Virus record (IMG/VR): IMGVR_UViG_3300023184_000024
Span: 1-64,000 of that record
Strand: one strand, 5' to 3'
Length of the DNA: 64,000 nt
Part shown: positions 4,667 through 46,169 of the stretch, piece by piece
How the letters are laid out: the number at the start of each line of letters is the position of its first letter
How positions within the stretch are numbered: the first letter of the stretch is position 1
Position numbers and translations under genes: made by a program
Notes under the pieces: model-generated
Database searches by the model: none
Told to the model about the DNA's origin: nothing
Seen by the model: only the letters and a program-made list of their open reading frames with translations

Positions 4667-5305
4667 ATGATACATGCACAGCACATACACAATGTTTTTG
4701 ATTTAGATGAAGTTGATCGTATTAAAAAACTCTTGTCCTTGGTTCCTGCACAAGACCATATTAAAAATAGGTCAATTGTGACCAACGGGTTTACATCCAA
4801 GGATCCGATTTACCTAGCTATAAAAAAACTTGTAATTGACCGCATCAATACAGTGTGTGAACACAAGGTATCGAACCTAACAGTTGGCATGCACTTGATA
4901 ACAAGAGACCCATTTGGTATACACAGCGATGCGCCAGGCAAGGGCGACAATGGTAGTGGGATTGCCTATTTGGTTCCGTTAGAAATGGTTCGCAACGACA
5001 GTGCCAAACCAACGTCAAGTACCATCATTTTTGATCAAGTCTGGACAGACACCACATCAATAGAAGATTACATTGCCAGTGGCCCTGAAAAAGTTGCTAG
5101 TCCGGCAACACATGTTTGGCCCATGCTGTCCGAAAAGTGCGATCCTGCTTGGGCGCCCTACCTCAGCGTCAAGCTTGTGGCCGAGTGGCAAATTGGTTCC
5201 GTTATAGTCTGGGATCGAAGGTTGTTGCATGCCAGTGATGATTTTTTGGCTGCAGGATTAATTGAAAAATCAGCCTTGGTTCTCTTTACTAATTCGCAGT
5301 CATGA
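4667..5305 (+). CDS. 2OG-Fe(II) oxygenase-like protein
   Basis: HSD (HxD) ... VWDRRLLHAS. Confidence 0.65.
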   Translation: MIHAQHIHNVFDLDEVDRIKKLLSLVPAQDHIKNRSIVTNGFTSKDPIYLAIKKLVIDRINTVCEHKVSNLTVGMHLITRDPFGIHSDAPGKGDNGSGIAYLVPLEMVRNDSAKPTSSTIIFDQVWTDTTSIEDYIASGPEKVASPATHVWPMLSEKCDPAWAPYLSVKLVAEWQIGSVIVWDRRLLHASDDFLAAGLIEKSALVLFTNSQS

Positions 5306-6738
5306 TAACAGCAGTGATTGCGTCGGTTCCTTGGACTGACACTGACTCCCCATTGATGGCGCCAGGTGTGTTAAAAAGCGCACTGACTCAGCATGGAATA
5401 AAATCAGTGGCCATTGATTTAAATGCAGAAATACGTCAATACATTTTGACCCACCCAAAGAAAGATGACTTGTTGCAGTTTATATTGACCGAACAAGTCA
5501 CTGCCGGATGTGAGCAAGATGTACACGACCTGATAAACATGATGGTTGATCGTATACTAGCATTTAATCCAGAATGGGCAATATTGAGTCTGTTGACCTA
5601 CATAAGTCAGATACCAAACAAATGGTTGTGCTTCCAACTACGGCAGAGAAATCCAAACATTAAAATTATCATTGGCGGCCCTGGGTGTTTCAGTAGTTTA
5701 AAAAGCATTGATTCGTACGCAGTGAATTTAAAATCTCAAGGGTTGGTTGACCATTTTGTAGCCGGTGATGGTGAAGTGGCCCTGCCTATGCTGTTAAAGG
5801 GCGAAACCGGTCCGGGGATCAACAATGTTGATTGGCAACAGCTAGATAACATAGATATTTTGCCAAGTCCAGACTACGATGACTACGATTGGTCACTGTA
5901 TCGATTAAAAAAAGTCAACATCCTAGGTAGTCGTGGCTGTGTCAGAGAATGTACTTTTTGTGACATACACGAACATTGGCCAAAATTTCAATGGAGGTCA
6001 GGTGCAAATATCTTTGAAGAAATGAAGCATCAAAGAGAAAAGTACGGTATTAATTATTTTTCATTTGCTGACAGTTTGGTCAATGGCAACCAGCGTGAGT
6101 ACCGGGACCTCATACAACGACTAGCTGATTACAACCAAGCCAAGACTGATCCTGATGATAAAATCAACTGGACCGGTGCATTCATTGTACGCCCGGCCGA
6201 TCAGATGAAAGAACGCGACTGGGAATTGACTGCTGCCAGTGGTGCAGTCATGTTGTCCGTGGGAGTAGAGAGTTTTGTAGAGCACATACGATACCATATT
6301 AAAAAGAAATTCAGCAATGCTGACCTTGACTATGCTTTACAAATGGCACAGAAGCACACGGTGTCCATGCAGTTGTTGATGATTGTTGGGTACGTAACTG
6401 AAACTCAAGAAGATCACGAACAGCAAAAACAATGGGTCACTGATAACCAGCATTATATAAACTCACCCATCAAGCTTATTCAAATTGGCAGTGGACTGGG
6501 CATACTTCCCGGCACCTGGCTACAACGCAATCAAGAAAGCTTGGGTATAAAAATTGGCAGTGCTGATGTGTATCAAGATTGGGTTAGAGAATCAATTGGC
6601 AGCACTCCGTTGGTTCGCATGCAATGGCACAAAGAGATGAAGCAACACATGGAACAAACAGGGTTTACTGTGGCCTACCTCAAAGATAACCATGTGTTGA
6701 TTGAAAATTATCTACGGGATCGTTATGCCAAAACTTAG
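5302..6738 (+). CDS. B12-binding (class B) radical SAM enzyme
   Basis: IIIGGP, GDGE, SRGCVRECTFC (CxxxCxxC), GVES. Confidence 0.9.
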   Translation: MITAVIASVPWTDTDSPLMAPGVLKSALTQHGIKSVAIDLNAEIRQYILTHPKKDDLLQFILTEQVTAGCEQDVHDLINMMVDRILAFNPEWAILSLLTYISQIPNKWLCFQLRQRNPNIKIIIGGPGCFSSLKSIDSYAVNLKSQGLVDHFVAGDGEVALPMLLKGETGPGINNVDWQQLDNIDILPSPDYDDYDWSLYRLKKVNILGSRGCVRECTFCDIHEHWPKFQWRSGANIFEEMKHQREKYGINYFSFADSLVNGNQREYRDLIQRLADYNQAKTDPDDKINWTGAFIVRPADQMKERDWELTAASGAVMLSVGVESFVEHIRYHIKKKFSNADLDYALQMAQKHTVSMQLLMIVGYVTETQEDHEQQKQWVTDNQHYINSPIKLIQIGSGLGILPGTWLQRNQESLGIKIGSADVYQDWVRESIGSTPLVRMQWHKEMKQHMEQTGFTVAYLKDNHVLIENYLRDRYAKT

Positions 6739-7153
6739 TATGAACTTATCTGTGGGGCATTGTCGTGGTACGAGTATGAGTCTTTGTGTCACAGTCAACG
6801 GTGAAGAAATTTACAAAGCTGACAGCATTGATGAGCCAACAATCATAATTGAGCATAGTGCAATACTACCATTGAGCTTGATTTTTGATGTTGGCAACAA
6901 AAGCGACTCAGACACTGTGATTGACAGCAATGGTAAAATACTAGAAGACAAGTTTATACAAGTAGATCGCTTGCTGTTGGACGGGCTAGATATAAAACCT
7001 TGGGTGTTACAAAGCCGAGTGTTTGAGTTTAACTCAAACAACGGCATGACCAAAACCAATTGCTTTGCTTACAATGGACAAGCCTCTATGAATGTTGAGC
7101 AAACTGATTTATTAAAATACTTTTTAGAATTGATGGTGAAAAATGATTACTAA
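6725..7153 (+). CDS. beta-rich hypothetical protein (paralog of 61980..62414)
   Basis: NKSDSDTVIDSNGKILEDK...YNG. Confidence 0.7.
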   Translation: MPKLSMNLSVGHCRGTSMSLCVTVNGEEIYKADSIDEPTIIIEHSAILPLSLIFDVGNKSDSDTVIDSNGKILEDKFIQVDRLLLDGLDIKPWVLQSRVFEFNSNNGMTKTNCFAYNGQASMNVEQTDLLKYFLELMVKNDY

Positions 7154-8294
7154 TTTTCGCGACGTAGTCGCTTATAAAAAATATGGGCGGCAGCCCAAAG
7201 ATTACCACATTGCTGGTATTATTAGAACCCAACTGATCTACGCAGTCAGAGATGCCCCGGTACAACAGCCCAAAGGCCCATACGTTGAACAAGCACTGGA
7301 ATTGATGTTTGGAAACATTGATTGGACAAACACATTTCACACACCCCACACCATAGTGATTGAAGAAACTGCTACCTCAGAACACTTGATGGGCATGCAC
7401 AATTGGATTCGCCGAAAATGCGCAAACATTGAAAACGTCACTGTGGTGATCACTGGAAATACCGGAGTGTGCGATTGGTGGAAGTCTTGGTGCACAGTTT
7501 TTAGAGAAAAATCTTTTAGAGTCATTGAATGGCCATTTCCTTACCGTACTTGGAATATCGATCGAGGGTTTGCACCGTCAGAAATACCCCCAACAATTGG
7601 GCCAAAAAATTTACAATATGTGTTTAGCTGTTATGGCGGAAGTTATTCCATCATTGACCGTTGTTATCTAATATTGAAACTTTGTAAGTTCTATAAATCT
7701 TCGGTGATTGATTATCTAGGAAAGTTTTGTACCAAACAAGAACTGTTAGACTATGTGGAATGGAAAAGTTATTACAGCAATCAAAATGAAATTGACGCCA
7801 TAGATAATCTATACGACCAATACATTGTCAATCAAGAGTATGCTAAACCATCATTGCCCAACTTGACTATTGTCAAATCTAAGGTCAACGAAGCCATCAA
7901 TTGGGACGGATTTCAGTGGGCAGTTGACCAAAAATGCTTTGCCGCCGTGGTCAGAGAAACCATCAACGATGATGTATTCCCCACTGTGTCAGAAAAAACC
8001 ACACGTAGTTTCTTGCATTTTTGCACAGTATTACCAACCGGATACAACGCAGTCAAAGATTTAGAAACTTTGGGATTTTGGTTCCCACACGACTTGATTG
8101 ACTACAGTTATCAATCACATGCTAGTTACATTGACCGAATAAACGGACTTTGCAAAAATTTAGAAAAGTTGCAAGCCCTTTTGGAGACAGGCGAATTACA
8201 GGACTACTACAACGATAATTTTGAAAAATATCAACACAATGCACTATTGGTTTTGGACATGTATCAGGACGCCGAACAGCAACTAAACACTTGA
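7143..8294 (+). CDS. putative glycosyltransferase-like protein
   Basis: C-terminal VRET...VSEKT...LETLGF...IDYSY pattern. Confidence 0.5.
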   Translation: MITNFRDVVAYKKYGRQPKDYHIAGIIRTQLIYAVRDAPVQQPKGPYVEQALELMFGNIDWTNTFHTPHTIVIEETATSEHLMGMHNWIRRKCANIENVTVVITGNTGVCDWWKSWCTVFREKSFRVIEWPFPYRTWNIDRGFAPSEIPPTIGPKNLQYVFSCYGGSYSIIDRCYLILKLCKFYKSSVIDYLGKFCTKQELLDYVEWKSYYSNQNEIDAIDNLYDQYIVNQEYAKPSLPNLTIVKSKVNEAINWDGFQWAVDQKCFAAVVRETINDDVFPTVSEKTTRSFLHFCTVLPTGYNAVKDLETLGFWFPHDLIDYSYQSHASYIDRINGLCKNLEKLQALLETGELQDYYNDNFEKYQHNALLVLDMYQDAEQQLNT

Positions 8295-8320
8295 CCGTTA
8301 AATAGCAGGTGTGTTATAAT
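8291..8320 (+). promoter_or_regulatory. early promoter
   Basis: TTGACC (overlaps TGA)-18-TATAAT, 5 nt before ATG. Confidence 0.7.
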
Positions 8321-8325
8321 GAGAT

Positions 8326-8796
8326 ATGCTTAAAAAACTCATGCAATATTTTGGACGACACCGGGTGATCATGGATCGTGTGTCATCGGAACCTTATCTT
8401 GAGAGATACTATTTGTTCCTCAAAGATAGAAAACGGTTTCCGTTTAATGTGTTCCTGCACAAGTTCCTTAAAAGTGATCCTGACGATGTGCACGATCATC
8501 CATGGCCTTACGCTACAATTATTTTAAAAGGTGGTTATTATGAATGGGTGGCAAAATTTAACTCCTTGGGAGAAAAGATCGGTGAAGAAAGAATGTGGCG
8601 TGGTCCTGGCCATTTCCGTGTATGTAGTGCTACTTCTTATCATCGTATTGAACTTAAAGCAGGAACAGACTGCTGGACTTTGTTCATGCCAGGTCCACAA
8701 CGTAGAGAATGGGGTTTCTTAGTTGACAACAAATGGCTACACAATGAAGATTATCTTGCACAGCAAATTGCAAATAAATTAAAGGAAACAGCATAA
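8326..8796 (+). CDS. cupin-domain protein
   Basis: HDHPW...GGYYE...HRIEL...WTLF..GP..REWGF. Confidence 0.8.
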   Translation: MLKKLMQYFGRHRVIMDRVSSEPYLERYYLFLKDRKRFPFNVFLHKFLKSDPDDVHDHPWPYATIILKGGYYEWVAKFNSLGEKIGEERMWRGPGHFRVCSATSYHRIELKAGTDCWTLFMPGPQRREWGFLVDNKWLHNEDYLAQQIANKLKETA

Positions 8797-8972
8797 TGCA
8801 ACAGTTTACACTCACACGCAAGCAAGTTGAAGAAATTTATCGTATATTCAAAGATAATGGTGATGCATTGACCCAAGTTGAAATCTTGGTTGAAAGCACA
8901 AATGGCATTGGGCCCACGATGACTGTGGAATACTCGGCCACACTTGATATAACTGACACGGAGAATTGGTAA
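8796..8972 (+). CDS. small hypothetical protein (58 aa)
   Basis: MQQFTLTRKQ...NGIGPTM...DITDTENW; TAATG-coupled at both ends. Confidence 0.7.
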   Translation: MQQFTLTRKQVEEIYRIFKDNGDALTQVEILVESTNGIGPTMTVEYSATLDITDTENW

Positions 8973-9703
8973 TGAAAGTTTACATTGGCAACTATCGAGA
9001 TCACTGGATCTCCCCTTACACCATGTTGGACTACATGTTCTTCTGGACTGACTGGAGCAAGTGTGCTCGTTGGAAACTTCTGCAAACATTAGAAGACGAG
9101 GGCCGAGAAAAATCTGTGTACGTGGAACGTCCAGATTGGTGCGAACCGTGGAGTGATCGACTGGAACCTATCAGTAAAGCTATTCAGTGGGTGTTGGATC
9201 TTGTGCATCCTAAAATTAACTATGTGAAAATTGACTACTACGACACCTGGAGCATGGATCACACTTTAAGTCCCATCATTCTGCCCATGTTGCGACAACT
9301 CAAAGAAAAAAAGCACGGTTCTCCGCTGGTAGACGATGACGATGTGCCCGAAGGCCAGGGTCTGCGTAGCACCGAAGCAGGCCCCAAAGAAAACGAGTGG
9401 GACATAGATGAAAATCACTTTAAACGTTGGGACTGGGTCATGAACGAAATGATCTTTGCATTTGAGTGCAAGGTTGATGATTCATGGCAGGATGCCTACC
9501 GCGAAGGTGAAATTGACTGGATCAGTGTTCCGGTGGATGCTGCCGGCAATGAAGTCCCTAAAGGCGAACACAAATACTACCAAATGAAAGATGGACCTAA
9601 AAATACCTACAAGTGCGACTATGAAGGTATGAAAAAGGTTGAAGACCGTATTCAAAACGGCTTCCGCTTGTTTGGCAAATACTACCAGGGCTTGTGGGAT
9701 TGA
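8972..9703 (+). CDS. conserved phage hypothetical protein
   Basis: DTWSMDHTL...KHGSP...RWDWVMNEMIFAFE...GFRLFGKYYQGLWD. Confidence 0.8.
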   Translation: MKVYIGNYRDHWISPYTMLDYMFFWTDWSKCARWKLLQTLEDEGREKSVYVERPDWCEPWSDRLEPISKAIQWVLDLVHPKINYVKIDYYDTWSMDHTLSPIILPMLRQLKEKKHGSPLVDDDDVPEGQGLRSTEAGPKENEWDIDENHFKRWDWVMNEMIFAFECKVDDSWQDAYREGEIDWISVPVDAAGNEVPKGEHKYYQMKDGPKNTYKCDYEGMKKVEDRIQNGFRLFGKYYQGLWD

Positions 9704-9957
9704 TGATTAATTTTATTACTGCAAGTCCCATGGATTATACTGTGGGCATGTTAAACAAAAAACGTACCCCAAATTTTAGCCTTACATCGACGCAATATGC
9801 ACAGTGGAAAAAACGCTACACGTTTGATGGACTGCGAGGGGCAAAATACGGTCAGAGTTTTTGCCAACAATTTGACATTGTAGATAATATCTTACAATAT
9901 TGTTTACCCCCACTTGATGCTGATAGCTATATACAGGAACATTATATTGTCGAATGA
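9703..9957 (+). CDS. hypothetical protein
   Basis: Coupled ORF; YGQSFC motif. Confidence 0.65.
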   Translation: MINFITASPMDYTVGMLNKKRTPNFSLTSTQYAQWKKRYTFDGLRGAKYGQSFCQQFDIVDNILQYCLPPLDADSYIQEHYIVE

Positions 9958-10208
9958 CCGTTGCCCATCCTGTACATGAAGCCCGCCCCACTGCTTCCTT
10001 GCGGAGCAAAGAAAGTTTTCCTTTTGTACAGGAAATAATAAAACCATACGGTGAGTTGGATTCAATTATTGCCTGGTGTAAATCTGAATGCAGAGACATC
10101 TGGCGCTGGCAATTGTTGGATATAAGTTCGGATACATGTCCCGGAAAGTATCGTTTTTACTTTGATTCGGACCTAGATTGTTCGGCATTCATTATAAAAT
10201 GGTGCTAA
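9954..10208 (+). CDS. small protein of the F-x4-D-x3-F-x-L-x-W family
   Basis: WCK...YRFYFDSDLDCSAFIIKWC. Confidence 0.7.
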   Translation: MTVAHPVHEARPTASLRSKESFPFVQEIIKPYGELDSIIAWCKSECRDIWRWQLLDISSDTCPGKYRFYFDSDLDCSAFIIKWC

Positions 10209-10226
10209 AACCCACAGTTATTGTGG

Positions 10227-10255
10227 TTGACCAGTAATTCCCTTTATTGTATACT
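10227..10255 (+). promoter_or_regulatory. early promoter
   Basis: TTGACC-17-TATACT. Confidence 0.8.
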
Positions 10256-10304
10256 TGTATTTGTGTAGTTAATACACATCACAATTTAACTTTTGGAGTA
10301 CTTT

Positions 10305-11378
10305 ATGACTAAGCGACTATCGCGCCTATTGTCTGAGGTTGCCGCAGAAGTCCTGACAGAGCTCAAGGACAAGCACAATTTCACCGACAAAGAACTAGAC
10401 CGTATCAAAGCCCGTATCAAATCTACCGGGTACGGATTTCCCATTGGACTAGCACTGATGGACATCACTGACATTTGGATCGACTATGAAGTTCAGCGTG
10501 ACGTCATTGTCAAGCATGTGCTCAACATCATTCGAAAATTTGATCCAAGGATTGTTGGTGCGGCCAGTTGTGTGAGACTTCCTAAAAGCAAGTTTCCCAA
10601 CAGATACTATGCATATGATGGACAGCACCGAAGCCTGGCAATGTGGATTTTAGGCTACACTCATATCCCTGCCTGCTATGTTGAAACAGACAATGAACGT
10701 TTTGCCAGTGAAGCATTTGAGATTCTCAACGACTCTGGTATCAAGAAAATCGGCAAGCCGGACCTACATCGTATTCGCTTGAATCTTGTGGACAAGGGCA
10801 GTGAAGACAAAGCCAATTTACAGGCTAGAACTTTGCAGGATCAGTTTGACATCACAGATGTGGACTTGCAAGAATCTGCACATAGGGAGAACCCAAAGAA
10901 GTGCGGCCCTAATCAACACTGGTTCAGTCACTTTGACTATGCTTACAAAGGCATCAAACAAGATGCCAGCGGTGAAGTGATCAAAGACATTCTCACAGCA
11001 ATTAAAACTGTGTTTCCAGAGCAAGATGAAATTGACCAAGGTGTTTACATTGGACTGTTGCAGTTGGCAAACCTCAACAAAGAGCTGGTACTCAAACAGC
11101 CTGCCAATTGGATGATACAGATCTTGCGTGACGGTGTGGCCAAGTCGTTTACATCCAGCCACATGGCACATGATATGTCCAAGGCCCAGTGGAAACACGC
11201 CATTGGATCGTGGAGTGCCCCGGATGCCATGAGCAAGTTCCTGCGTGAGATGTACAAACTGCATGGCGGCAAATTGATTGTGCCCACACAAGGACGTGGC
11301 ATGGGTATCCTACCCGACGAAGACGGCAGAACATTCTTGTGTGATGCCATCAAGCCTGCATTGAAAGGACTAGTATGA
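10305..11378 (+). CDS. DGQHR/ParB-Srx-like domain protein
   Basis: YEVQR...YAYDGQHR...F..LN; GGAG RBS. Confidence 0.75.
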   Translation: MTKRLSRLLSEVAAEVLTELKDKHNFTDKELDRIKARIKSTGYGFPIGLALMDITDIWIDYEVQRDVIVKHVLNIIRKFDPRIVGAASCVRLPKSKFPNRYYAYDGQHRSLAMWILGYTHIPACYVETDNERFASEAFEILNDSGIKKIGKPDLHRIRLNLVDKGSEDKANLQARTLQDQFDITDVDLQESAHRENPKKCGPNQHWFSHFDYAYKGIKQDASGEVIKDILTAIKTVFPEQDEIDQGVYIGLLQLANLNKELVLKQPANWMIQILRDGVAKSFTSSHMAHDMSKAQWKHAIGSWSAPDAMSKFLREMYKLHGGKLIVPTQGRGMGILPDEDGRTFLCDAIKPALKGLV

Positions 11379-11926
11379 GCTTGCAAAAATTAGTGGAAAG
11401 TTTTGTCCCTGTTAACTACAGTCGTGTGCAACGTGGAGAAAAATCTTATCGAGAGTCTTTGGCTTTCACTGTAAGCGAACTTGAGCGACTGGTTCCTATG
11501 TACAAGGCTCAGACCACAGTGGACCAAACTGCTCGTCAGATTCGAGACAGCATGGATCATCAAATCCGTAGATACCATGACTATGCTATCAAAGGATCAA
11601 TCGGTGCTCACTATCGCGAGGTTGGAGTAGATCCTAAAAAATGTGTGTTTGAACATGTTATTCCGCTGGCCAAACTTAGAGATATGATGTTGCAAGGTAT
11701 CTTGACAGTGCCACAAGCATTGAACGCACCAACTTGTTTGATCAGTATACACAATGACGAGATACTGCGAGAAGAAGGGCATGTGAGTTCAAGTCCCGAC
11801 TACTGGCATTTTTTCGACAGGTATGCGGTGTTCGACGATACTCGCTTTACCACTTACACTGGTGAGGAGATCTCTGATCCACATGCATGGACCTTGGAAA
11901 AGCATTTTGAGTATTTCAACGCCTAG
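11375..11926 (+). CDS. putative His-Me/HNH-like nuclease
   Basis: VFEHVIP...NAPTCLISIHND; ATGA-coupled to the DGQHR gene. Confidence 0.5.
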   Translation: MSLQKLVESFVPVNYSRVQRGEKSYRESLAFTVSELERLVPMYKAQTTVDQTARQIRDSMDHQIRRYHDYAIKGSIGAHYREVGVDPKKCVFEHVIPLAKLRDMMLQGILTVPQALNAPTCLISIHNDEILREEGHVSSSPDYWHFFDRYAVFDDTRFTTYTGEEISDPHAWTLEKHFEYFNA

Positions 11927-12083
11927 GCGTTAGTTATCCAATTATATTGACCTCATTAACAGGGTTTATTATAATAAAAATTTGCCATACATAAATTTAC
12001 GTCTCTAAAAAGACCACAGCGGCTTTTGTATATTTTCGGGCCGTTGGTGTTGGAAAGCCAGCATTTAACCTAAAGGAACCAAA

Positions 12084-12650
12084 ATGAAAAAATATATGCA
12101 AAAGGCATTGCATCTTGCAATGTTTGCACTTATCGCCTTCACAGGCATTACCGTGGTGACATACACCACACAAACCAAGTTTGATAGATTGCGAGCAGAT
12201 TTACCTGGTGATGTTTCAACCATTGGTGACTTTAAGGCCGCACTACGAGACAAAGAACGCAGGATGCAGTGCATGACACAAAATGTGTACTGGGAAGCAG
12301 CCAGTGAACCAGCAGAAGGTAAAATTGCAGTGGCTCAGGTTGTAATGAATCGTGTGGCCAGTGGCAAGTACCCTGCAGACCCTTGCCAGGTAGTGCACCA
12401 AAAGAATGTGGTGTACGAAAGAGTACTGTGTCAGTTTAGTTGGTATTGTGAAAACACCAGCAAGACCAGACCAGTGCATAAAAAGCTCTGGGCCGAAAGC
12501 GAAGAAGCAGTAAAGATGGTCATGATTGATGGCTTTAGATTGCCCGAACTCAAAGACGCATTGTACTATCACGCCGACTATGTAAACCCACAGTGGAACA
12601 AAAAACGTGTGACAAAGATTGGCCGACATATTTTTTACAAGGATATCTAA
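12084..12650 (+). CDS. cell wall hydrolase (SleB/Hydrolase_2)
   Basis: NVYWEAASE...AVAQVVMNRV...CQFSW...YYHADYVNP.W...IGRHIFY. Confidence 0.9.
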   Translation: MKKYMQKALHLAMFALIAFTGITVVTYTTQTKFDRLRADLPGDVSTIGDFKAALRDKERRMQCMTQNVYWEAASEPAEGKIAVAQVVMNRVASGKYPADPCQVVHQKNVVYERVLCQFSWYCENTSKTRPVHKKLWAESEEAVKMVMIDGFRLPELKDALYYHADYVNPQWNKKRVTKIGRHIFYKDI

Positions 12651-12956
12651 ATGAAAAACTTTGACATTGAAAAAACAGTAACTTGGTTGCAAGAGTGGAT
12701 GGCTCCCGTTTCAGCAAAGACTCTGGGATGGTTGGCTGTGCTGTTGTTACACGCCGCAACTTTGCCCACGTTACTGGCCATCCTTACTGGTCTTAGCGAT
12801 CGCATGCCCAGTGTAGACATGGTGTTGTTGACCTGGGCTGGCTTGGTTGCTATGTTTGCGCAGGCCTGTGTGCAACGCAACTTTCTGAACATTGTGACCA
12901 TTGCTCTGGGCTTTATGATCCAAGCCAGTCTAATGGTGTTGATATTCTTTAAATAA
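12651..12956 (+). CDS. membrane protein
   Basis: Three hydrophobic helices. Confidence 0.75.
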   Translation: MKNFDIEKTVTWLQEWMAPVSAKTLGWLAVLLLHAATLPTLLAILTGLSDRMPSVDMVLLTWAGLVAMFAQACVQRNFLNIVTIALGFMIQASLMVLIFFK

Positions 12957-13005
12957 TTGCTTAAAAATTAGACAATGTTGTGTAAAAACAACACTTAAAT
13001 TTCGG

Positions 13006-13034
13006 TTGACTCAATATTCCTTTTTTGCTACAAT
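13006..13034 (+). promoter_or_regulatory. early promoter with upstream TGTTG-N8-CAACA palindrome (12976-12993)
   Basis: TTGACT-17-TACAAT; AAGGAG downstream. Confidence 0.8.
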
Positions 13035-13061
13035 AGAAGCATATTAAGAAACAAGGAGTCA

Positions 13062-13763
13062 TTGATGTATTCATATTACCGCCCCGGCTTCAGTGCAAAA
13101 CGCAAAGTGATCAATGGAATCAAATTCTCTCTGGACAATGTATGGGGTGCGGCAGTAGCGGCACAACGTGTTAACGGCGAGTACGTCAAAGAAGATAAGA
13201 TCAATATCAATGAAGATGGGTCTCATGAAACTCTCAAGAAGCGCAATCGTGACATCATGATGGACTTCCTGGCTGTACCCGGAACCATCACTGACGAAGA
13301 TCGTGCAACTGGTCGCGAATGCCGTAGATTCTTACAAAATGATCTTACCTTCCGAGCTCTCAAAGGTCAGCTGAGTGCATTTGATGCAAGTGTCAGCAAG
13401 GTAGTGGCTGTGGAAGAAGAATTTGACAGTGTGCAACATCGCCTAGAACTGGCTGTGGTTGCATGCCTGCCACAGAGCCATCAACGTGCAATAGTACGCC
13501 AGTCGATCCAGGATCGTGTTCGCAATGCCGGCGGCTATATTGGTAATGTCAGCGACAAAGTTGCATTGGACGCAGAAGTTGTGAGCGCCAATTGGAGCAA
13601 CATATACAACATTTTTTGGGTTACTGCAATTACTCAAGATAATCAAGCTTTGTTTTTCAGCTACAAATCCCAGCTGAACTCGGGCGTCCAAATCAAATTA
13701 GTTGGTACGGTGAAAGCTCACCGTGACAACAAAACTCAACTCAACCGTGTCAAGGTAATTTAA
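13062..13763 (+). CDS. hypothetical protein with C-terminal OB-fold-like region
   Basis: IG...KV.L..EV...GTVKAH....TQLNRVK. Confidence 0.7.
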   Translation: MMYSYYRPGFSAKRKVINGIKFSLDNVWGAAVAAQRVNGEYVKEDKININEDGSHETLKKRNRDIMMDFLAVPGTITDEDRATGRECRRFLQNDLTFRALKGQLSAFDASVSKVVAVEEEFDSVQHRLELAVVACLPQSHQRAIVRQSIQDRVRNAGGYIGNVSDKVALDAEVVSANWSNIYNIFWVTAITQDNQALFFSYKSQLNSGVQIKLVGTVKAHRDNKTQLNRVKVI

Positions 13764-14000
13764 ATGAATAAAAGACCCATTACATTAACAAATCTAACAC
13801 CACACCAAGTTGATCTATTAGATCAAATGTGGGCACTGGAAAGCATGGAAGAAGTTGAAGAATGGATGCTCACATTGAGTGCTCGAGATCGTGTGTTAAG
13901 CTCGACCCTGATGCAAATGGTTATGCAAGAGATGGTTGAGGAGTTGGCAGTCGAAGATCTAAGTTTGGCCAATGACTATCTAAAACGTTTTCAATTATGA
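13764..14000 (+). CDS. hypothetical protein
   Basis: Coupled ORF. Confidence 0.7.
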   Translation: MNKRPITLTNLTPHQVDLLDQMWALESMEEVEEWMLTLSARDRVLSSTLMQMVMQEMVEELAVEDLSLANDYLKRFQL

Positions 14001-14338
14001 ACTACAAAGAACATCAATTCTTGGTTATGTGGGACTGTAATGGTCTTGAGTATGTGGCCGATGTCACTGCTGATCAACAACGTGTGACTTGGGAAAAGCT
14101 TCAAGGCAAAGAAACACCAAGACATTCGTATGCAAACCCATATCATTTGAAGCTTAGGGCACAGTTTAATTCGCAACGTCACTACGAGATCTACACATTC
14201 AATGCTGTCGAAGGCATTGGTGAACAAGAAATCCGTGACATGTTTGAAAACGATCCGCAGATGGCCGCAGACACCATTCGTAGAATAGGACATTGTATTC
14301 ACAGCGACCGTGCCACGGAACAAGTCACAATTCGCTAA
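13997..14338 (+). CDS. hypothetical phage protein
   Basis: MWDCNGLE...LRAQFNSQRHYEIY. Confidence 0.75.
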   Translation: MNYKEHQFLVMWDCNGLEYVADVTADQQRVTWEKLQGKETPRHSYANPYHLKLRAQFNSQRHYEIYTFNAVEGIGEQEIRDMFENDPQMAADTIRRIGHCIHSDRATEQVTIR

Positions 14339-14377
14339 ATGAAGTTCAAACGTCAACAAGCAAAAGAAAGATTAGAT

Positions 14378-14797
14378 ATGGGACTTGACATGTATGCATA
14401 CGTGGCCGCCAAGGCAGGCCAACAACGAGAATACGACGGCGCCAGCTGGGACGACGTCGCTAAAGATATTGTAAACAACGCAGTTTCTAAACCTCGTGAG
14501 ATTGCTTACTGGCGTAAACATCCGAACCTGCATGGTTGGATGGAACAACTGTGGAATCGACGTAATGGAGGCAATCAAGACGGTGGCCCTTTCAATGGCG
14601 TTGAGTTGGAACTGACTTACGAAGACTTAGAGGCTCTTGAGTTAGATGTCATTGCTGGTACTCTACCCGAAACCACTGGATTCTTCTTTGGCAACGACTC
14701 TGATGCCCATTATCGTAACGACGACCTTGAGTTTATCAAGCTTGCCCGTGCAGAATTGTTCATGGGTTTGCATGTTTTCTACAACAGTAGTTGGTAA
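14378..14797 (+). CDS. conserved phage protein (MGLDMY/YWRK type)
   Basis: MGLDMY...YWRKHPNLHGWM...GFFFG...YNSSW. Confidence 0.8.
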   Translation: MGLDMYAYVAAKAGQQREYDGASWDDVAKDIVNNAVSKPREIAYWRKHPNLHGWMEQLWNRRNGGNQDGGPFNGVELELTYEDLEALELDVIAGTLPETTGFFFGNDSDAHYRNDDLEFIKLARAELFMGLHVFYNSSW

Positions 14798-14825
14798 GTG
14801 CTTACTAACATGTTTAAAATAACGG

Positions 14826-14965
14826 TTGACCAATTATTGCTTATTTGCTATAATATTGATATGAACTGTACAAACACCCCCGAATTTGAGTTGCCCAAAA
14901 CCAATGTTTTTGGTAATTCAAATATAGCAAAAGTGATTGACCAATTAATCATCTTTTGCTATACT
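14826..14965 (+). promoter_or_regulatory. tandem early promoters
   Basis: TTGACC(14826)-17-TATAAT(14849) and TTGACC(14937)-17-TATACT(14960). Confidence 0.8.
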
Positions 14966-15029
14966 AACGGTATGCTGAAAACACAGCATATTTTTAACTT
15001 TAACTTAGGCTCTTTGAAAGGCATCTATC

Positions 15030-15380
15030 ATGGCTCAAACTGAAAAACTTTTTACCGTTGCTGGCACCGCTACACAAAATGGCACTACCAAAGTGCGTTT
15101 TGCCAACGACATGGTTGCTCGTGTCAAAATTTTGACAAAGAACAACTGTGATAACATTAACCTTATTGAGCTTCCACGCCCAATGACCAAATTGGAAGCT
15201 TTGCAACATTTGCAAACTTTGGGCATCACTGATGGTGACGCAGGCTATGCTGTTGCCAACAAGTTGTCAGAAAAATCCAAGGTCGCTAAACGTGCTGAGG
15301 TAAAAGTAGCAGTAAAACCTGCCACAAGCAACAAAGCAAAAGCAAAAGCTACTGTAGGCTCTACGCTGTCAGAAGCTTAA
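15030..15380 (+). CDS. basic hypothetical protein with Lys/Ala-rich tail
   Basis: FTVAG...KVRFAND..RVKIL...LIELP.PMTK.EA. Confidence 0.8.
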   Translation: MAQTEKLFTVAGTATQNGTTKVRFANDMVARVKILTKNNCDNINLIELPRPMTKLEALQHLQTLGITDGDAGYAVANKLSEKSKVAKRAEVKVAVKPATSNKAKAKATVGSTLSEA

Positions 15381-15403
15381 TAACTCTTAAGCAATTTTGC
15401 TAC

Positions 15404-15430
15404 AAAGCGGCCATAGTGCCGCTTTTCTTT
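15404..15430 (+). terminator. intrinsic terminator
   Basis: AAAGCGGC-CATAGT-GCCGCTTTTCTTT. Confidence 0.85.
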
Positions 15431-15458
15431 TGACTTTGTCAATTGTCATAATTACTAG

Positions 15459-15713
15459 ATGTCAAATGAGGATATGTTAGAATTTGTAATCCGTGGAATC
15501 GTCATTGAGATCTGCGAGGTAATGTATAGGCATGGGCTCAACCCAGTGCCGTTGGCTCCTATAATGCGTTTGTTAGAAGTGCCAGAAGAGCAGGCTAAAA
15601 AATACGATGGTATGGTGTTTGAATTAGACGACGAGTTCATTGAGTTGGCCAAAAAACATCGGAATATTCAAAACAGTCTTCTGAGCATGCCGTCAGACGC
15701 TACAATACATTGA
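15459..15713 (+). CDS. hypothetical protein
   Basis: ORF ending ...TIH. Confidence 0.7.
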   Translation: MSNEDMLEFVIRGIVIEICEVMYRHGLNPVPLAPIMRLLEVPEEQAKKYDGMVFELDDEFIELAKKHRNIQNSLLSMPSDATIH

Positions 15714-15952
15714 TGTCTATAACCAGTTACCGGGCCAATGAGCCGCTGTATCTTGTGATCATAAGACACAACAATGCCGAAAAGTTACTAAAGGAATGGG
15801 CACAATCGACCAGGACTGATGTATCAATTGACAACAACCGAATGAGATTATTTGAGGACAAGGCATTAAATTTATTCCAAGTCACTTGGTCACACAGTTG
15901 GGACATGGTTACTATCTGGGATTACTGGAATAAGCGACACATTTATTTTTAG
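15710..15952 (+). CDS. hypothetical protein
   Basis: Coupled ORF. Confidence 0.65.
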   Translation: MMSITSYRANEPLYLVIIRHNNAEKLLKEWAQSTRTDVSIDNNRMRLFEDKALNLFQVTWSHSWDMVTIWDYWNKRHIYF

Positions 15953-16036
15953 CTAGAGTGCCAAAATCACCAGAAAAGTGTTGACTTATTGACATCAATG
16001 TCATAAAATACTTGTACTGATCACAAAGGAGAACAC

Positions 16037-16228
16037 ATGTCAGCAAATCACGACGCAATCAAAACCGCATACGAAACTTATGTTTTGGAAAATGAGAAGT
16101 TCACAGGCAAAGGTGTCAAAGCTGCCGCCGCCCGTGCCAGAAAAGCCTTGCAGGAAATGAGCAAAGCAATCAAAGAACGCCGAAAAGAAATCACCGCAGA
16201 AAAAGAAGCGTTAACAGTGGCCAAGTAA
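16037..16228 (+). CDS. histone H1-like (Hc1 family) small basic protein
   Basis: KF..KGVKAAAARARKALQEM....KERRKEI; promoter TTGACT(15981)-17-TAAAAT; AAGGAG. Confidence 0.75.
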   Translation: MSANHDAIKTAYETYVLENEKFTGKGVKAAAARARKALQEMSKAIKERRKEITAEKEALTVAK

Positions 16229-16233
16229 CCAAT

Positions 16234-17352
16234 ATGAAAATTTTAATGACTGGTGCCAGTGGCTTTATTGGGAGCCATCTGTTTCCGATACTATCAACTA
16301 GTCATGACGTACATGCACTAACTAGTGACTTGTTGAATTTTTCTGAAGTTCGACAAGAAGTAGAAAGTTGTAATCCAGATTTAGTTATACATTTGGCAGC
16401 AAGAACAGAAGTGGAACGTAGTTTTTACGAACCAATGACGTTCAGTCAAATTAACTATGATGGTAGTATCAATCTCATTGAAACATGTAAAAAGTTACCT
16501 AACCTACGTAACTTTTTATTTGCAAGTACCATGGAAGTATATGGATGGCAGCCTATCAGCGACGAGGTACAACACACCGGAAGTTTTGTACAGTCTGTGG
16601 CATTCGATGAACATACCGCACCTAATCCCAATGCACCTTATGCAGTGGCCAAATTTGGGGTGGAAAAGTATCTTGAATACATGCACCGAAGCCAAGGGTT
16701 TCCTTTTACATCACTGAGACAAACCAATGCATACGGTCGAAAAGACAATGACTTTTTTGTAACAGAGCAAATAATTACTCAAATGTTGAAAAATCCATCC
16801 GATGTGTATTTGGGTTACGAAAAACCTTTTCGTAACTTTATCTATGTTGACGACCTTATATCCGCTTGGGTAAGTTTGGTTGAGCACACAGATTCAGTCA
16901 ACCAAGGAATGATTTTTACTGTTGGCCCGGATAACCCAATTCAAATAGGTGCCTGGGCTGATATTATTGCAAAAAAACTCAACTGGCACGGGCAGATACA
17001 TTGGAACTCCAAGCCCACTCGCCCTGGTGAAATATATTGGCTGAACAGTGGGAACACACTGATCCATCAAGTCACCGGGTGGCATCCATTGGTAGAGTAC
17101 GATCAAGGTTTAGATAATACCATTGATATATGGAAAAAAAAACTTGCAAGTTATACAATGACTGATACAAAATTTACTAGAACCATTGTGGAAGATCCGG
17201 ATAGTCCGGGGGAACTCATGTTGGATCTCGGAGATGAAGTATGTGATCATCTGGGATGGCAACCAGGTGATGTCGTAGAATGGATTGACAACAAGGATGG
17301 TTCATGGACTTTACGCAAATCAATCTTGCCCTCAACAACAACGATACTATGA
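16234..17352 (+). CDS. NAD-dependent epimerase/dehydratase, in frame with a C-terminal AbrB/SpoVT-like domain (from ATG 17158)
   Basis: TGASGFIG, HLAA, STMEVYG, YAVAK; tail LGWQPGDVVEW. Confidence 0.85.
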   Translation: MKILMTGASGFIGSHLFPILSTSHDVHALTSDLLNFSEVRQEVESCNPDLVIHLAARTEVERSFYEPMTFSQINYDGSINLIETCKKLPNLRNFLFASTMEVYGWQPISDEVQHTGSFVQSVAFDEHTAPNPNAPYAVAKFGVEKYLEYMHRSQGFPFTSLRQTNAYGRKDNDFFVTEQIITQMLKNPSDVYLGYEKPFRNFIYVDDLISAWVSLVEHTDSVNQGMIFTVGPDNPIQIGAWADIIAKKLNWHGQIHWNSKPTRPGEIYWLNSGNTLIHQVTGWHPLVEYDQGLDNTIDIWKKKLASYTMTDTKFTRTIVEDPDSPGELMLDLGDEVCDHLGWQPGDVVEWIDNKDGSWTLRKSILPSTTTIL

Positions 17353-30274: not shown

Positions 30275-32236
30275 ATGCCAATACTATTATCTGGAAAAGT
30301 AAAAACCACACCACCCGATCAAGTATCTGCTGAGAGATATGATTATCTGTCTCTGGAACAAGCTGAACCCAATCTTGGAGTACCTCCGGGAAATGCTTAT
30401 GTGTTAACCAGCAATGTTGATGGAACACGCACTTGGGGCCTACCTTCAGGATCCACCGGCGCCACAGGTGCCACTGGACTTACTGGTGCCACCGGCAGCA
30501 CAGGACCACAAGGCGCCACAGGCAGCACAGGTGTTCAAGGCGCCACAGGCATACAAGGCAGCACAGGACCAATCGGAGCCACCGGCAGCACAGGACCAAT
30601 CGGAGCCACCGGAGCAGGCAGCACAGGTGCCACAGGACTCAGGGGAGATCAATACTCTACTACATCATCTACATCATTGACCATTGGCACAGGAGTAAAA
30701 TCCTTGACAGTGGGAACAGGGCTGGCTTGGACTCCAGGTCAACCAGTTCTTATTGCATATGACTCTGTTAATACCATGTCTGGAACAGTGACCAGTTATA
30801 CTTCTGGTACCGGCGCTATGGTGACAAATATAACCTCTACCACTGGGTCTGGAACCTATACAAGTTGGGCTGTTAACTTATCTGGTGTTGCTGGAATCCC
30901 GGGAGCCACTGGTGTTTTTGGAGCCACTGGCAGTACAGGACCACAAGGTAGTACTGGCAGTACAGGACCACAAGGTGCCACTGGAGTAGTTGGGGCCACC
31001 GGCAGCACTGGCGTACAAGGTGCTACTGGCATACAAGGCAGCACTGGAGCAGGTAGCACAGGTGCTACTGGAGCCACAGGTCCTGTTTCCACAGAGCCTG
31101 GCGCAACAGGTGCCACCGGGGCAGGAGCCACAGGACCCATAGGCGCCACTGGTACGATCGGTGCTACTGGCAGCACAGGACCAGCAGGCAGCACAGGACC
31201 ACAAGGCACTCCTGGAGGAGCCACTGGCAGCACAGGTGCCACAGGACTAGGCGCAACAGGAGCCACAGGAGCATTTGGTCTTACTGGTTCTACCGGTGCA
31301 ACAGGCCCACAAGGCAATCCAGGAGGAGCCACTGGCAGCACTGGTGCCACAGGCATCACTGGAGCCACAGGAGTACCCGGGATATTTGCCGGAATAGGCG
31401 CAACTGGTAGTACAGGGCCACAAGGACCACAAGGAAATCAAGGCGCACAAGGCAATCCAGGCGGAGCCACAGGCGCCACTGGATCTACAGGGCCGACTGG
31501 CGCAACTGGAATTCCTGGATCATTTGCTGCCATGGGCGCAACTGGCGCATCAGGGCCAACTGGATCTACAGGGCCGACTGGCGCAACTGGACCAGCAGGT
31601 ACACCGGGGTCAACTGGTCCTACATCTAGTCTTAGTGTGGTTGACACAGCTGACAACAACGATTACTATGTGTCATTCTTGGCACAATTTACAGGCACCA
31701 CAAACACAGTTTATGTGGCCAATCCAGAATTCAAATTCAACCCTTCTACTAAAAACCTAACAGTGGGCGGGATAATAAATGCCAACAGTGATGGGTTTGG
31801 TAATATTGGATCCCTAGGGGGATCATTTAACACAGTGTTTGCCAAATCAACCAGCGCACAGTATGCTGACTTGGCCGAGTATTATTTGGCTGATCAAGAT
31901 TATCCACCAGGTACTGTGGTCAAGTTTGGTGGCACAGAAGAACTCACCATTGCAGATCAAGATCTTGATCCAACCATTGCTGGAATAGTATCCACTACTC
32001 CAGCCTATGCTATGAACTCAAGCCTAACTGGTGAACATGTCATTGCTGTGGCACTGGTAGGCCGTGCACCGTGCTTGGTCAAAGGACCTGTGCGTCGGGG
32101 GCAAATGATGGTGTCAGCTGGTGATGGCTATGCCCGAGCTGAAAACAGTCCTGCCATGGGCACAGTAATTGGCAAATCGCTAGAAGATTTCAATGAAGAA
32201 TCGGGCAAAATTGAAATTCTTGTTGGAAGAATGTAA
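30275..32236 (+). CDS. Thr-rich collagen-like fibre protein with C-terminal chaperone-like domain
   Basis: Long G-X-T/G-P-Q triplet runs; C-terminal YADLAEYY...G.VST.PA...VALVGR...GK.LE. Confidence 0.85.
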
Positions 32237-40159: not shown

Positions 40160-40721
40160 TGCCGATGGCGTACTCTTAAACTGGGAGTATGCTTTTAGTA
40201 TCTGGATGGAACAGCACGGGTTTGAAAAAATACCCGGTGGCGATTTAAACTACGACATTGGTGAACGTTACAACATTTCCTGGGATCAAGGGAAAAAACT
40301 AATCAAGATGTTCAACGAATCAGCATCTATTGGATTTTTGCCTCCCTTGCGTGATGCCATGTACTATGTCAAGAGACTGCACGAAGAACATGGCTATGTG
40401 TTTCACTGTATTACTAGCCTGAGTTCCGATGTCAATGCACAGCGTTTGAGAGAAATGAATCTAAGCAAGTTGTTTGGGGACACCGTGTTTCAACGAATTG
40501 TGTGTTTAGAAACAGGTGCAGACAAAAACGATGCCTTGGAACCTTACAGAGATAGCGGATGTTGGTGGGTCGAAGACAAACCAGAAAATGCCGAGGTTGG
40601 CCACAGCATGGGCTTACGTTCTATATTAATGGAACATGGACACAACATGACTCACCATAACAATGATATTCCTGTGGTCAAGAATTGGAAAGAAATTTAC
40701 GATATTGTGGTTGATCAGTGA
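40092..40721 (+). CDS. HAD-family 5'(3')-deoxyribonucleotidase-like protein
   Basis: DADGVL...ITS...K...VEDK..N. Confidence 0.85.
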   Translation: MDTKLSNHKKPQKHNPKQLILVDADGVLLNWEYAFSIWMEQHGFEKIPGGDLNYDIGERYNISWDQGKKLIKMFNESASIGFLPPLRDAMYYVKRLHEEHGYVFHCITSLSSDVNAQRLREMNLSKLFGDTVFQRIVCLETGADKNDALEPYRDSGCWWVEDKPENAEVGHSMGLRSILMEHGHNMTHHNNDIPVVKNWKEIYDIVVDQ

Positions 40722-41701
40722 CCACAGGCAGCAACACAGGCATACAACTTTCCGTGTGCTATGCTGGGCAATGCCCAAGTTTTTTCCACTAGGTCAAACC
40801 AATCGATACAGTGCTCTAAGCTGTGATGTTTGGCATTGTTTTCTTTGACCATGTCTTTGAATTGGCTATTGCCAGGCTGATGCATGGTACCAGGAAAGAA
40901 CCCTAGAAAACAACACGGGTATATAGATCCGTCAGCAGCCACATAAATTTCTTTTTGTTTTATGTGAGCACATTTTATTTCTGCGTCATCGTTGACCCAG
41001 GGTATTTTCTTTGTGTGATCAAACCAGGTCACATGACTTTCAAGCAACACATCAACCTTGGGTGGCTCGGGTTCGGGACTGCCCAACCAATGACTAAATT
41101 CGCCATCTCTTGTGAACACCGGTCCTTGATTGCGTCCGTGATCTCGTAGTACGAACTCCGAAAACCCTAGTTGACTGCTCATTGCTCGACATGCATCAAG
41201 CTGATGTTGATTGTGTGTGAATGGAATAAACTTCCAAACAGCGTTGCCGCCTACAGCAATCAAGGCCTTGGCATTTTCTAGTATTTTCCCCCATTGGGTA
41301 TCTTGGCGATACAAGCTGTGTGTGTCTTCAAGACCGTCTAATGCAAACAGCACTTTGATTCGAGGATTACTTAATTGCTGCCACCAAGCAGGAGAACGAG
41401 TACTGCCGTTGGTTTCAATTTGTATGTGCGCACTGCTGTTGTCTAAAAAATAGTCAACAATGGCCAGGGCATCACTGGCCAGACTAAAGTCCCCAAGGTT
41501 GCCATTGAAGTTTACACGATTGATTTGCTTTAGGAACGCAGGAGTGAATATGTGTTGAATATCATCAAGTGATAATTCAGTCAATGGGTAACCACCGTTG
41601 AACTCCGATCCCCGATAGTTGCGCATACACATGGGACACCGGGCATTGCATCGAGTGCTGAGTTCAATGTGCAATGCCCGAATTTGGTCTACTTTGATCA
41701 T
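40715..41701 (-). CDS. radical SAM protein with twitch/SPASM domain
   Basis: CNARCPMC, TNG, DG, G.IYPCC, C...CG. Confidence 0.9.
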   Translation of the reverse strand: MIKVDQIRALHIELSTRCNARCPMCMRNYRGSEFNGGYPLTELSLDDIQHIFTPAFLKQINRVNFNGNLGDFSLASDALAIVDYFLDNSSAHIQIETNGSTRSPAWWQQLSNPRIKVLFALDGLEDTHSLYRQDTQWGKILENAKALIAVGGNAVWKFIPFTHNQHQLDACRAMSSQLGFSEFVLRDHGRNQGPVFTRDGEFSHWLGSPEPEPPKVDVLLESHVTWFDHTKKIPWVNDDAEIKCAHIKQKEIYVAADGSIYPCCFLGFFPGTMHQPGNSQFKDMVKENNAKHHSLEHCIDWFDLVEKTWALPSIAHGKLYACVAACGH

Positions 41702-45191: not shown

Positions 45192-46169
45192 ATGTCAATC
45201 AAAAAATTATTGCTAGCCGCTTTATTAATGCCAATTATGGCATTTGCTTGGGAACCCACCAAACCTGTACAGGTTTATATTGGAAATACACCGGGCGCAG
45301 GTAACGAAATGGCCTTTAGGAAACTGGCTGAAATCGTTCAGAAACATAATCCCAAATTTGTTTATGTTGTACAAAACATTCCCGGGGCAGATTCAGTTAT
45401 TGCTAACAACCGGTTTTTAGAAGCACCCAATGATGGCTATACAATTAACTTGCCCAGCCACATGAGTAGCTATGTTACAAATGACATTTGGGAAAAGTCA
45501 ATTAAGAAATACAATTATGACTCATTTATTGATGTGCTCACAATGGGCAAATCACCATTGGTCCTAGTTGCTGGTGTCAAAAGCGGCATCAACACCCCAC
45601 AGGAGTTTGTGAAGTATATTCAAAGTGGTAGAACAATCAGTATTGCCATTGGTGGAGGCGCACATCGTACAGCATTTGAATACTTAATGGAAAAAGGTCG
45701 GGGCAATAAAGACACAGTCAAACCTATTAAATTTAACGGTCCAATGCCAGCCGTGACCAGTGCCGCAAGCTATGATGGTAAAACAGGTACGGAATTTGCT
45801 ATTATTCCTATTGCGGTTGCAAAAGCATTAGTTGACGCGGGCAAGGTTAAACCAATTGGCTTTACTGGTACACAACGGATGGCACAGTTTCCTAATGTTC
45901 CGTTGTTGCGTGATGTAGCACCTGGCATCAATGTGTATGCTGCCTGGAGTATTCAATTGCCGCCTGGGACAAGTAAAGATATTGTTGAGTGGTACCAACA
46001 GCAGTTTAGCAAAGCAGTGCGTTCAGCAGAGTACAAAGAATACACAGATGCCAATGTTATATTCTACGCAGAAGATGAACTTACACCTGCAGGATTAAAG
46101 CGTCACATGGATGAACTACGTGCGGCATTTATTCCTGTGTTAAGCAAAATTGATTTAGGTAAAGAATGA
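45192..46169 (+). CDS. Bug/TctC tripartite tricarboxylate transporter substrate-binding protein
   Basis: Signal peptide; PGAG, N.PGA, PNDGYT, FPNVP, P.GT. Confidence 0.88.
   Translation: MSIKKLLLAALLMPIMAFAWEPTKPVQVYIGNTPGAGNEMAFRKLAEIVQKHNPKFVYVVQNIPGADSVIANNRFLEAPNDGYTINLPSHMSSYVTNDIWEKSIKKYNYDSFIDVLTMGKSPLVLVAGVKSGINTPQEFVKYIQSGRTISIAIGGGAHRTAFEYLMEKGRGNKDTVKPIKFNGPMPAVTSAASYDGKTGTEFAIIPIAVAKALVDAGKVKPIGFTGTQRMAQFPNVPLLRDVAPGINVYAAWSIQLPPGTSKDIVEWYQQQFSKAVRSAEYKEYTDANVIFYAEDELTPAGLKRHMDELRAAFIPVLSKIDLGKE

Follow-up and report, generated by a model that had tools for sequence, protein, structure and literature searches.

Nucleotide-binding proteins with a ParB-like fold have been described both alone and in combination with nucleases. 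GmrS/GmrD combines an NTPase (NTP, nucleoside triphosphate) with an HNH-like nuclease, the two sometimes being split into adjacent genes; the hallmarks of the DGQHR domain are a QR pair, the DGQHR string itself and an FxxxN motif, and GmrD carries the motifs (I/L/V)(E/D)H(I/L/V)xPQ, L(G/A)NLxLLxxxN and NxxFxxKK (PMC4619093). DndB is a nucleotide-binding protein with a ParB-like fold, and a bacterial ParB-CTPase fold fused to a canonical HNH domain (PF01844) exists as well (PMC12704722). Here we describe a two-gene unit at positions 10227-11926 of a window of 64,000 nucleotides, by which we mean the whole stretch of DNA that was analyzed, namely positions 1-64,000 (the first 64 kb) of the complete, 352,754-bp virus record IMGVR_UViG_3300023184_000024, which has direct terminal repeats. 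Its open reading frames (ORFs), ORF1 and ORF2, appear from their sequences to encode a ParB-fold NTPase and a nuclease-like effector that belong to two unnamed families outside those described, neither of which has a domain assignment. We propose, at a little short of even confidence, that the two form an NTP-gated DNA sensor or clamp with a nuclease effector, working like GmrS/GmrD without being of that family. The predicted features of the unit are as follows.

10227-10255, plus strand: sigma-70-type promoter, TTGACC-N17-TATACT with GG directly before it, one of eight GGTTGAC-type sites
10262-10278, plus strand: hairpin in the 5' untranslated region with a stem of 6 bp (TGTGTA/TACACA) and the loop GTTAA; a TTAAC box and GGAG (10295-10298) come after it
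10305-11378, plus strand: ORF1, 357 amino acids (aa), a predicted NTP-binding protein of the ParB fold, in which a helical region resembling a DNA-binding domain precedes a C-terminal region that has no fold match
10446-10739, plus strand: residues 48-145 of ORF1, the ParB/Srx NTPase domain, containing Q64-R65, D105-G-Q-H-R109 and F138-xxx-N142 including E139
10740-11096, plus strand: helical region of ORF1, residues ~146-264, which can be superposed on the DNA-binding domains of KorB, ParB and Noc
11375-11378, plus strand: ATGA, in which the stop of ORF1 overlaps the start of ORF2
11375-11926, plus strand: ORF2, 183 aa, modeled as a long hairpin of helices at residues 22-75 and an alpha/beta domain at residues 78-183
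11651-11656 and 11756-11758: E93-H94 and D128 of ORF2, candidate catalytic residues together with R149-Y150 and H177
11947-11975, plus strand: promoter of the next gene (the SleB-like hydrolase at 12084-12650), TTGACC-N17-TATAAT, the downstream edge of the unit

The unit shares the two-part design of the GmrS/GmrD systems (GmrSD, BrxU and SspE; type IV restriction with a DUF1524 His-Me nuclease), and the pairing of its genes is kept across related phages. Upon surveying 80 IMG/VR loci with a relative of ORF1 (L014-L093), we found a relative of ORF2 behind it, in the same orientation, wherever the downstream DNA sufficed, which was the case in about 75 loci. Even in a distant group, in which identity falls to 37% for ORF1 and 28% for ORF2, the pair is retained with an 8-nt overlap. 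When five relatives were picked by their capsid protein, the only complete one (374 kb) had the ORF1 gene and the pair, while the others were 45-86% complete, which makes their lack of it uninformative. On this comparison of sequences, the pair is conserved in uncultured freshwater T4-like jumbo phages. The original prediction, made from the letters of this DNA, had proposed a stand-alone unit with its own promoter, ATGA coupling and a DGQHR/ParB-like protein paired with a second gene, and these parts of it held: the promoter recurs as a similar site in 72 of 78 relatives, the overlap is in place and probably couples translation of ORF2 to that of ORF1, the DGQHR motif lies in a predicted ParB/Srx fold with all three hallmark motifs, and the split layout of an NTPase and an HNH-like protein has its precedent in GmrS/GmrD. 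It had also suggested comparison with the DUF262, DUF1524 and DndB families, and there the expected family match failed to appear, as the GmrSD_N, GmrSD_C and DndB hidden Markov models (HMMs) detect neither ORF1 nor ORF2.

ORF1 and the ParB-fold NTPases

ORF1 starts at the ATG at 10305 behind the GGAG, and its homologues align from this methionine and not from the TTG at 10293. There are 181 homologues (at 90% clustering), all without a name, and no Pfam, NCBIfam or PADLOC model matches ORF1 at E ≤ 1. PHROGs returned only weak 'ParB-like' matches (E 0.02), and a profile search of the PDB gave only matches with E > 0.1, among them SbnI at 0.74. Across the whole genome, the ParB_N (PF02195) and DndB (PF14072) HMMs had zero matches at E ≤ 10, and the GmrSD_N HMM (DUF262, PF03235) had a sole weak match, which was not ORF1 but a 174-aa frame at 216435-216776 on the minus strand (E 0.012); this frame, outside the window, may be a second ParB/Srx-like gene.

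The AlphaFold2 model of ORF1 has a predicted local distance difference test score (pLDDT) of 89.8, and in a second look at the fold search the first 32 rows all belonged to the ParB/Srx superfamily, of which ORF1, on this model, is a member at the level of the fold. Longer superpositions within residues 48 to 264 extended over 187 aa of KorB with KorA, 162 aa of Caulobacter ParB on parS, and 185 aa of Noc, at root-mean-square deviations of 5.0-5.5, which suggests that the helical region is the counterpart of the ParB-type DNA-binding domain. Residues ~265-357 gave no match in the fold searches. Conservation points to the same pocket: among 39 homologues (90-44% identity), ~60 columns are invariant, including Q64-R65, D105, Q107, R109, F138, E139 and N142, with H108 nearly invariant and position 106 alternating between G and A. 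These invariant residues, among them those on which NTP binding and hydrolysis depend in ParB-type proteins, correspond to boxes I-III of ParB-type NTPases, and the DGQHR string occupies residues 105-109 (10617-10631). We take ORF1, a ParB-fold protein with motifs of the DGQHR type and in a family of its own, to bind an NTP and probably to hydrolyze it, and probably to bind DNA.

Compared with the described families, ORF1 takes a mixed position. It resembles GmrS in having the ParB/Srx fold with the QR, DGQ(Q/H)R and FxxxN motifs, but differs from it (DUF262) in lacking a GmrSD_N match and in reading DGQHR instead of DGQQR. It carries all three hallmark motifs of the DndB/DGQHR domain (PF14072, TIGR03187), yet shows no PF14072 match (E ≤ 10), no NCBIfam match (E ≤ 1) and no dnd gene context; the NCBIfam library presumably includes DGQHR/DndB-type models. 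In contrast to the CTP-dependent ParB/KorB/Noc DNA clamps, its box II reads D[G/A]QHR in place of GERRxR, it has no ParB_N match, it has an extra C-terminal region (~265-357), and its partner is enzyme-like. Like the bacterial ParB-HNH fusion, the unit combines a ParB-fold NTPase with a candidate HNH-type nuclease (PMC12704722), whereas here the two are separate genes and ORF2 goes undetected by HNH models. Unlike SspE, BrxU and other PADLOC defence proteins, neither ORF1 nor ORF2 matches any PADLOC family at E ≤ 1.

ORF2 as a candidate nuclease

An exhaustive profile search of 1.84 billion representatives yielded only 152 relatives of ORF2, nearly all of 180-230 aa and none of them fused to a ParB domain. 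Conservation was computed on 105 representatives, in which R65, Y80, [E/D]93, H94, P97, P119, R149, Y150 and H177 show little or no variation: all sequences that align at the column of H94 (102 of 105) have this histidine, position 93 is always E or D, and 96 of 103 have D, H, N or E at position 128. This pattern of invariant residues is enzyme-like. The first GmrD motif has a counterpart in F-E-H-V-I-P with its invariant [E/D]H: [E/D]H[VIL]xP matches (I/L/V)(E/D)H(I/L/V)xPQ, and position 128 follows later as a metal-ligand-like position; against the second GmrD motif, ORF2 offers only an approximate counterpart (ALNAPTCLIS..ND) with a variable N117, and the third motif is absent. Of the EHVIP...N motif read in the original prediction, the EHVIP part (residues 93-97; 11651-11665) stands, with H94 kept family-wide, while the asparagine N117 is kept only in close relatives.

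Several further leads point toward the His-Me/HNH fold. A distant member of the family (P0386; hhalign probability 94%) reads VDHMIP, and its only nuclease-type Pfam match, HNH_4 (E 0.016), sits exactly on this motif; among the 46 distant members, HNH_4 matches 3, and no other Pfam family matches two or more. Using the ORF2 model (pLDDT 94.9) in a shape search of the ESM-Atlas, we obtained an HNH_2 cluster at a template modeling (TM) score of 0.50 over 138 aa, and a language-model search with residues 76-183 returned an 'HNH endonuclease domain' cluster at 0.76. In the DSSP assignment, strands at 90-94 and 120-124 are followed by a helix at 125-133, which would suit a beta-beta-alpha unit interrupted by an insert, and the coevolving pairs V95-C121, V91-D128, K88-H126 and P87-I123 fit antiparallel packing of segments 87-95 and 121-128; the coevolution comes from a trimmed run with an effective number of sequences of ~119 and is suggestive only, an earlier untrimmed run having been dominated by gap artefacts. 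Taken as leads from sequence and model, these observations incline us, at somewhat better than even confidence, to regard ORF2 as a very divergent His-Me/HNH nuclease. The HNH_4, HNH_2 and GmrSD_C (DUF1524, PF07510) HMMs found nothing genome-wide at E ≤ 10, GmrSD_C had 0 matches among the 46 distant relatives at E ≤ 0.1, and a profile search of the PDB with ORF2 gave nothing meaningful. A word-index protein search with the distant members returned family members only, all without Pfam domains.

The distant ORF2-domain loci, on bacterial and metagenomic contigs (L010, L012 and L095-L098), offer a view of the domain outside the phage pair. One relative (P0341, probability 98%) lies directly after a type I restriction-modification operon, hsdM-hsdS-hsdR; others neighbor DUF2779 or share a small operon with a membrane protein, close to DUF2779 and a WYL/WCX regulator; another lies behind an M41-peptidase-like/PGDYG protein. 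None of the distant bacterial relatives had a ParB-like neighbor at the loci examined. Because the distant relatives occupy variable, defence-like places with other partners, their distribution suggests that ORF2 is a portable effector module, and these loci may represent unrecognized defence modules.

Proposed mechanism and rival explanations

We suggest that ORF1 and ORF2 would make up a two-protein, nucleotide-gated, DNA-acting enzyme, its genes being transcribed by host RNA polymerase from the strong sigma-70-type promoter. As its fold and motifs imply, ORF1 would bind and probably hydrolyze an NTP in the ParB/Srx pocket (Q64-R65, G106-x-x-R109, E139 and N142) and would contact DNA via its ParB/KorB-like helical region. 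If the weak leads on ORF2 hold, [E/D]93-H94 could provide a metal ligand and the general base, and [D/H/N]128 a second metal ligand, and, by analogy with GmrS/GmrD, BrxU and SspE, the NTP state of ORF1 would license ORF2 to cut. We speculate that the target would be the DNA of the host or of a competing phage and not the phage's own replicating genome. A bolder form of this proposal is that the pair is an independently evolved NTP-gated nuclease not described before, in which a ParB-type clamp licenses a new His-Me branch, serving as a conserved early function by which freshwater T4-like jumbo phages destroy host or rival-phage DNA, with its effector reused in several unrecognized bacterial defence systems (those behind type I restriction-modification and beside DUF2779 and WYL regulators); in this full form we consider it possible but on the unlikely side. 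Should the NTP-gated model itself be correct, the pair would be a phage-encoded, family-level distinct case of a ParB-fold NTP switch coupled to a nuclease, it would open a way to study how uncultured freshwater jumbo phages take over the host early on or compete with one another, and it would flag an unrecognized effector domain in bacterial defence-like islands.

A number of points weigh against the proposed NTP-gated nuclease. No Pfam, NCBIfam, PADLOC or PHROGs HMM names ORF2, and Foldseek against the PDB and BFVD as well as VIA-align gave no nuclease match, residues 78-183 being barely probed in these searches because the N-terminal helical hairpin dominated the lists. Alignment of the ORF2 family by hhalign with 10 canonical phage HNH homing endonucleases gave no signal (probability 0.2%). 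N117 is conserved among close relatives only and not family-wide, and the invariant R149-Y150 and H177 lie outside the classical HNH signature. An ORF2-like shape is found in the Atlas inside Zeta-toxin/AAA_33 kinase proteins (TM 0.56), and also in the second BFVD row, so that another chemistry is possible. Physical binding between ORF1 and ORF2 is only putative: prediction of the complex gave a median of 0.31 against a mark of 0.32, with one unrelated control at 0.28, and was counted neither way. The HNH-like nature of the partner, as originally proposed, has thus gained several weak independent leads but no confirming HMM or fold match.

The main rival explanation takes ORF1 to be an NTP-dependent switch or sliding clamp of the ParB/KorB/Noc/DndB kind that regulates early transcription or organizes DNA, with ORF2 as a non-nuclease partner that locks it, loads it or is recruited by it, as KorA is with KorB. 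We think this unlikely, since the invariant His, Asp/Glu, Arg and Tyr of ORF2 look like those of an enzyme and not like a DNA-binding signature, the distant relatives of ORF2 lack a ParB partner in the defence-like islands that they occupy, and ORF1 has neither a ParB_N or DndB HMM match nor a GERR box. The lack of a ParB_N match and of a GERR box tells against a plasmid-like partition or genome-segregation module, a reading that the ParB fold of ORF1 would favor but that we regard as next to negligible. Compared with ParB partition systems, the unit has no ParA-type partner, ORF2 matches no P-loop or other family, and no centromere repeats (parS) have come to light so far, no search aimed at them having been made; moreover, the phage is T4-like, with a Gp23 capsid and direct terminal repeats.

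Alternatively, ORF1 could be an Srx/SerK/SbnI-type phosphotransferase, dependent on ATP and with a small molecule or a protein as its substrate, and ORF2 a hydrolase or transferase of the same pathway using H94 and H177. Such a role appears improbable to us: the part of ORF1 behind its NTPase domain matches DNA-binding domains of the ParB type on superposition, the signature cysteine of Srx is a glutamine in ORF1 as it is in the DNA-associated DGQHR/DGQQR families, and no candidate substrate pathway is conserved beside the pair. A last reading concerns DNA modification, with the pair serving as a counter-defence against phosphorothioate (Dnd/Ssp) or other modification-based immunity, or as a DpdB-like modification helper. 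Here the motif-level likeness of ORF1 to DndB/DpdB-type DGQHR proteins is all that speaks in favor, whereas there is no DndB HMM match and no NCBIfam match, and no dnd- or ssp-like Pfam match occurred in the ten neighboring ORFs scanned (5302-17352; some small ORFs there were unscanned). In contrast to DpdB/DpdA, a TGT-family match is absent from the complete 352,754-bp genome, and the absence of a TGT/DpdA gene excludes a role of the DpdA-DpdB type. We hold the modification-related reading to be very improbable overall, and the modification-sensing or anti-phosphorothioate function of the original prediction found no support. The genome has no thymidylate-synthase/hydroxymethylase or TGT/DpdA family gene, and the pair evolves slowly and is syntenic in this phage group, unlike the usual arms-race accessory gene.

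Promoters, insertion slot and genomic setting

In 72 of 78 related loci, compared to 24 of 495 random windows, a site of the form TTGACN-N16-18-TANNNT is found no more than 160 nt upstream of the ORF1 homologue, and its spacer is 17 nt in 68 related loci. Judged by promoter type alone, the pair is probably expressed early, because host RNA polymerase would recognize a strong sigma-70-type promoter. Between the promoter and the ribosome-binding site, the relatives (loci L014-L093) keep a hairpin whose stems differ while their complementarity is retained (for example CCCG/CGGG, CCAG/CTGG, GACGC/GCGTC and GGAGC/GCTCC), with a conserved core GCA-TNG-TGC, an adjoining TTAACC box and a median fold z-score of -1.46; its role may be that of a translational operator or of a processing site. 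No terminator-like site was found 3' of ORF2.

Sites of the GGTTGAC-N16-18-TANNNT type are enriched in the window, with 8 occurrences against 0.49 expected from shuffles and 0 of 100 shuffles reaching 8, and 6 of the 8 lie on the plus strand in the first 15 kb. A family of near-identical strong promoters extends through these 15 kb, as in an early region that host RNA polymerase would transcribe. Its members are the following.

1357, 1685, 2547, 10225, 13004 and 14824, plus strand: near-identical strong promoters, GGTTGACC...TTTG(C/T)TATAAT
8291, 11947 and 14937: further promoters of the near-identical strong family

The junction between the two genes varies among the relatives. ORF1 and ORF2 are directly joined (-4 to +3 nt) in ~25 related loci, as they are without an insert in the window copy, while in ~50 loci, about two thirds of the relatives, 345-1120 bp lie between them. 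In all but a few cases this gap holds an extra ORF (the slot was compared in loci L014-L093, L002 and L003), and the ORFs belong to at least six unrelated families, including those listed here.

13 loci: HNH endonuclease (Pfam HNH_3, E 1.9e-5)
1 locus: HNH with NUMOD3 (Pfam HNH and NUMOD3, both below cut-off), homing-endonuclease-like
3 and 3 loci: two families with weak to moderate PHROG 'endonuclease' matches
27 loci: a family with no Pfam or PHROG match
3 loci: a further family with no Pfam or PHROG match

The 27-locus family had been considered as GIY-YIG-like, which Pfam and PHROGs did not confirm. In T4-type phages, free-standing homing endonucleases settle between conserved genes, and the slot between ORF1 and ORF2 looks like a hot spot for such endonucleases, which would single out the pair as a conserved target within this group of phages.

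We assign the virus to the T4-like jumbo myoviruses because its genome has genes for a Gp23 capsid protein of the T4 type (E 1e-99), a large terminase and a baseplate protein resembling T4 gp9/10. The stretch with ORF1 and ORF2 was found in lake and freshwater metagenomes of many studies: two metagenome runs contained contig pieces identical over most of it, and other runs contained strains 90-98% alike. None of the RNA runs contained the stretch, and in the GenBank phage collection neither ORF1 nor ORF2 was matched at the DNA or protein level. In one run (X3), a contig joins 10133 to 12022, skipping 1,888 bp that correspond exactly to the promoter-ORF1-ORF2 unit, on an anchor of just 28 nt; this junction may come from a strain that lacks the unit or has a divergent replacement of it, or may be artefactual. 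Other genes annotated in the window are given below.

5302-6738; 40715-41701 (minus strand); 62414-63394: three radical-SAM genes, one with a SPASM domain
12084-12650: SleB/CwlJ-type cell-wall hydrolase (Hydrolase_2, E 2e-23)
12651-12956: 101-aa hydrophobic protein, holin- or membrane-partner-like, directly after the SleB-like hydrolase
16234-17352: NAD-dependent sugar epimerase/dehydratase
30275-32236: collagen-repeat fibre protein
45192-46169: TctC-like solute receptor
58485-60746: ClpB-like chaperone

The distant relative L002, too, has a SleB-like hydrolase a few kb downstream of its pair, and a radical-SAM gene is likewise found 1-4 kb upstream of the pair in relatives L003 and L005.

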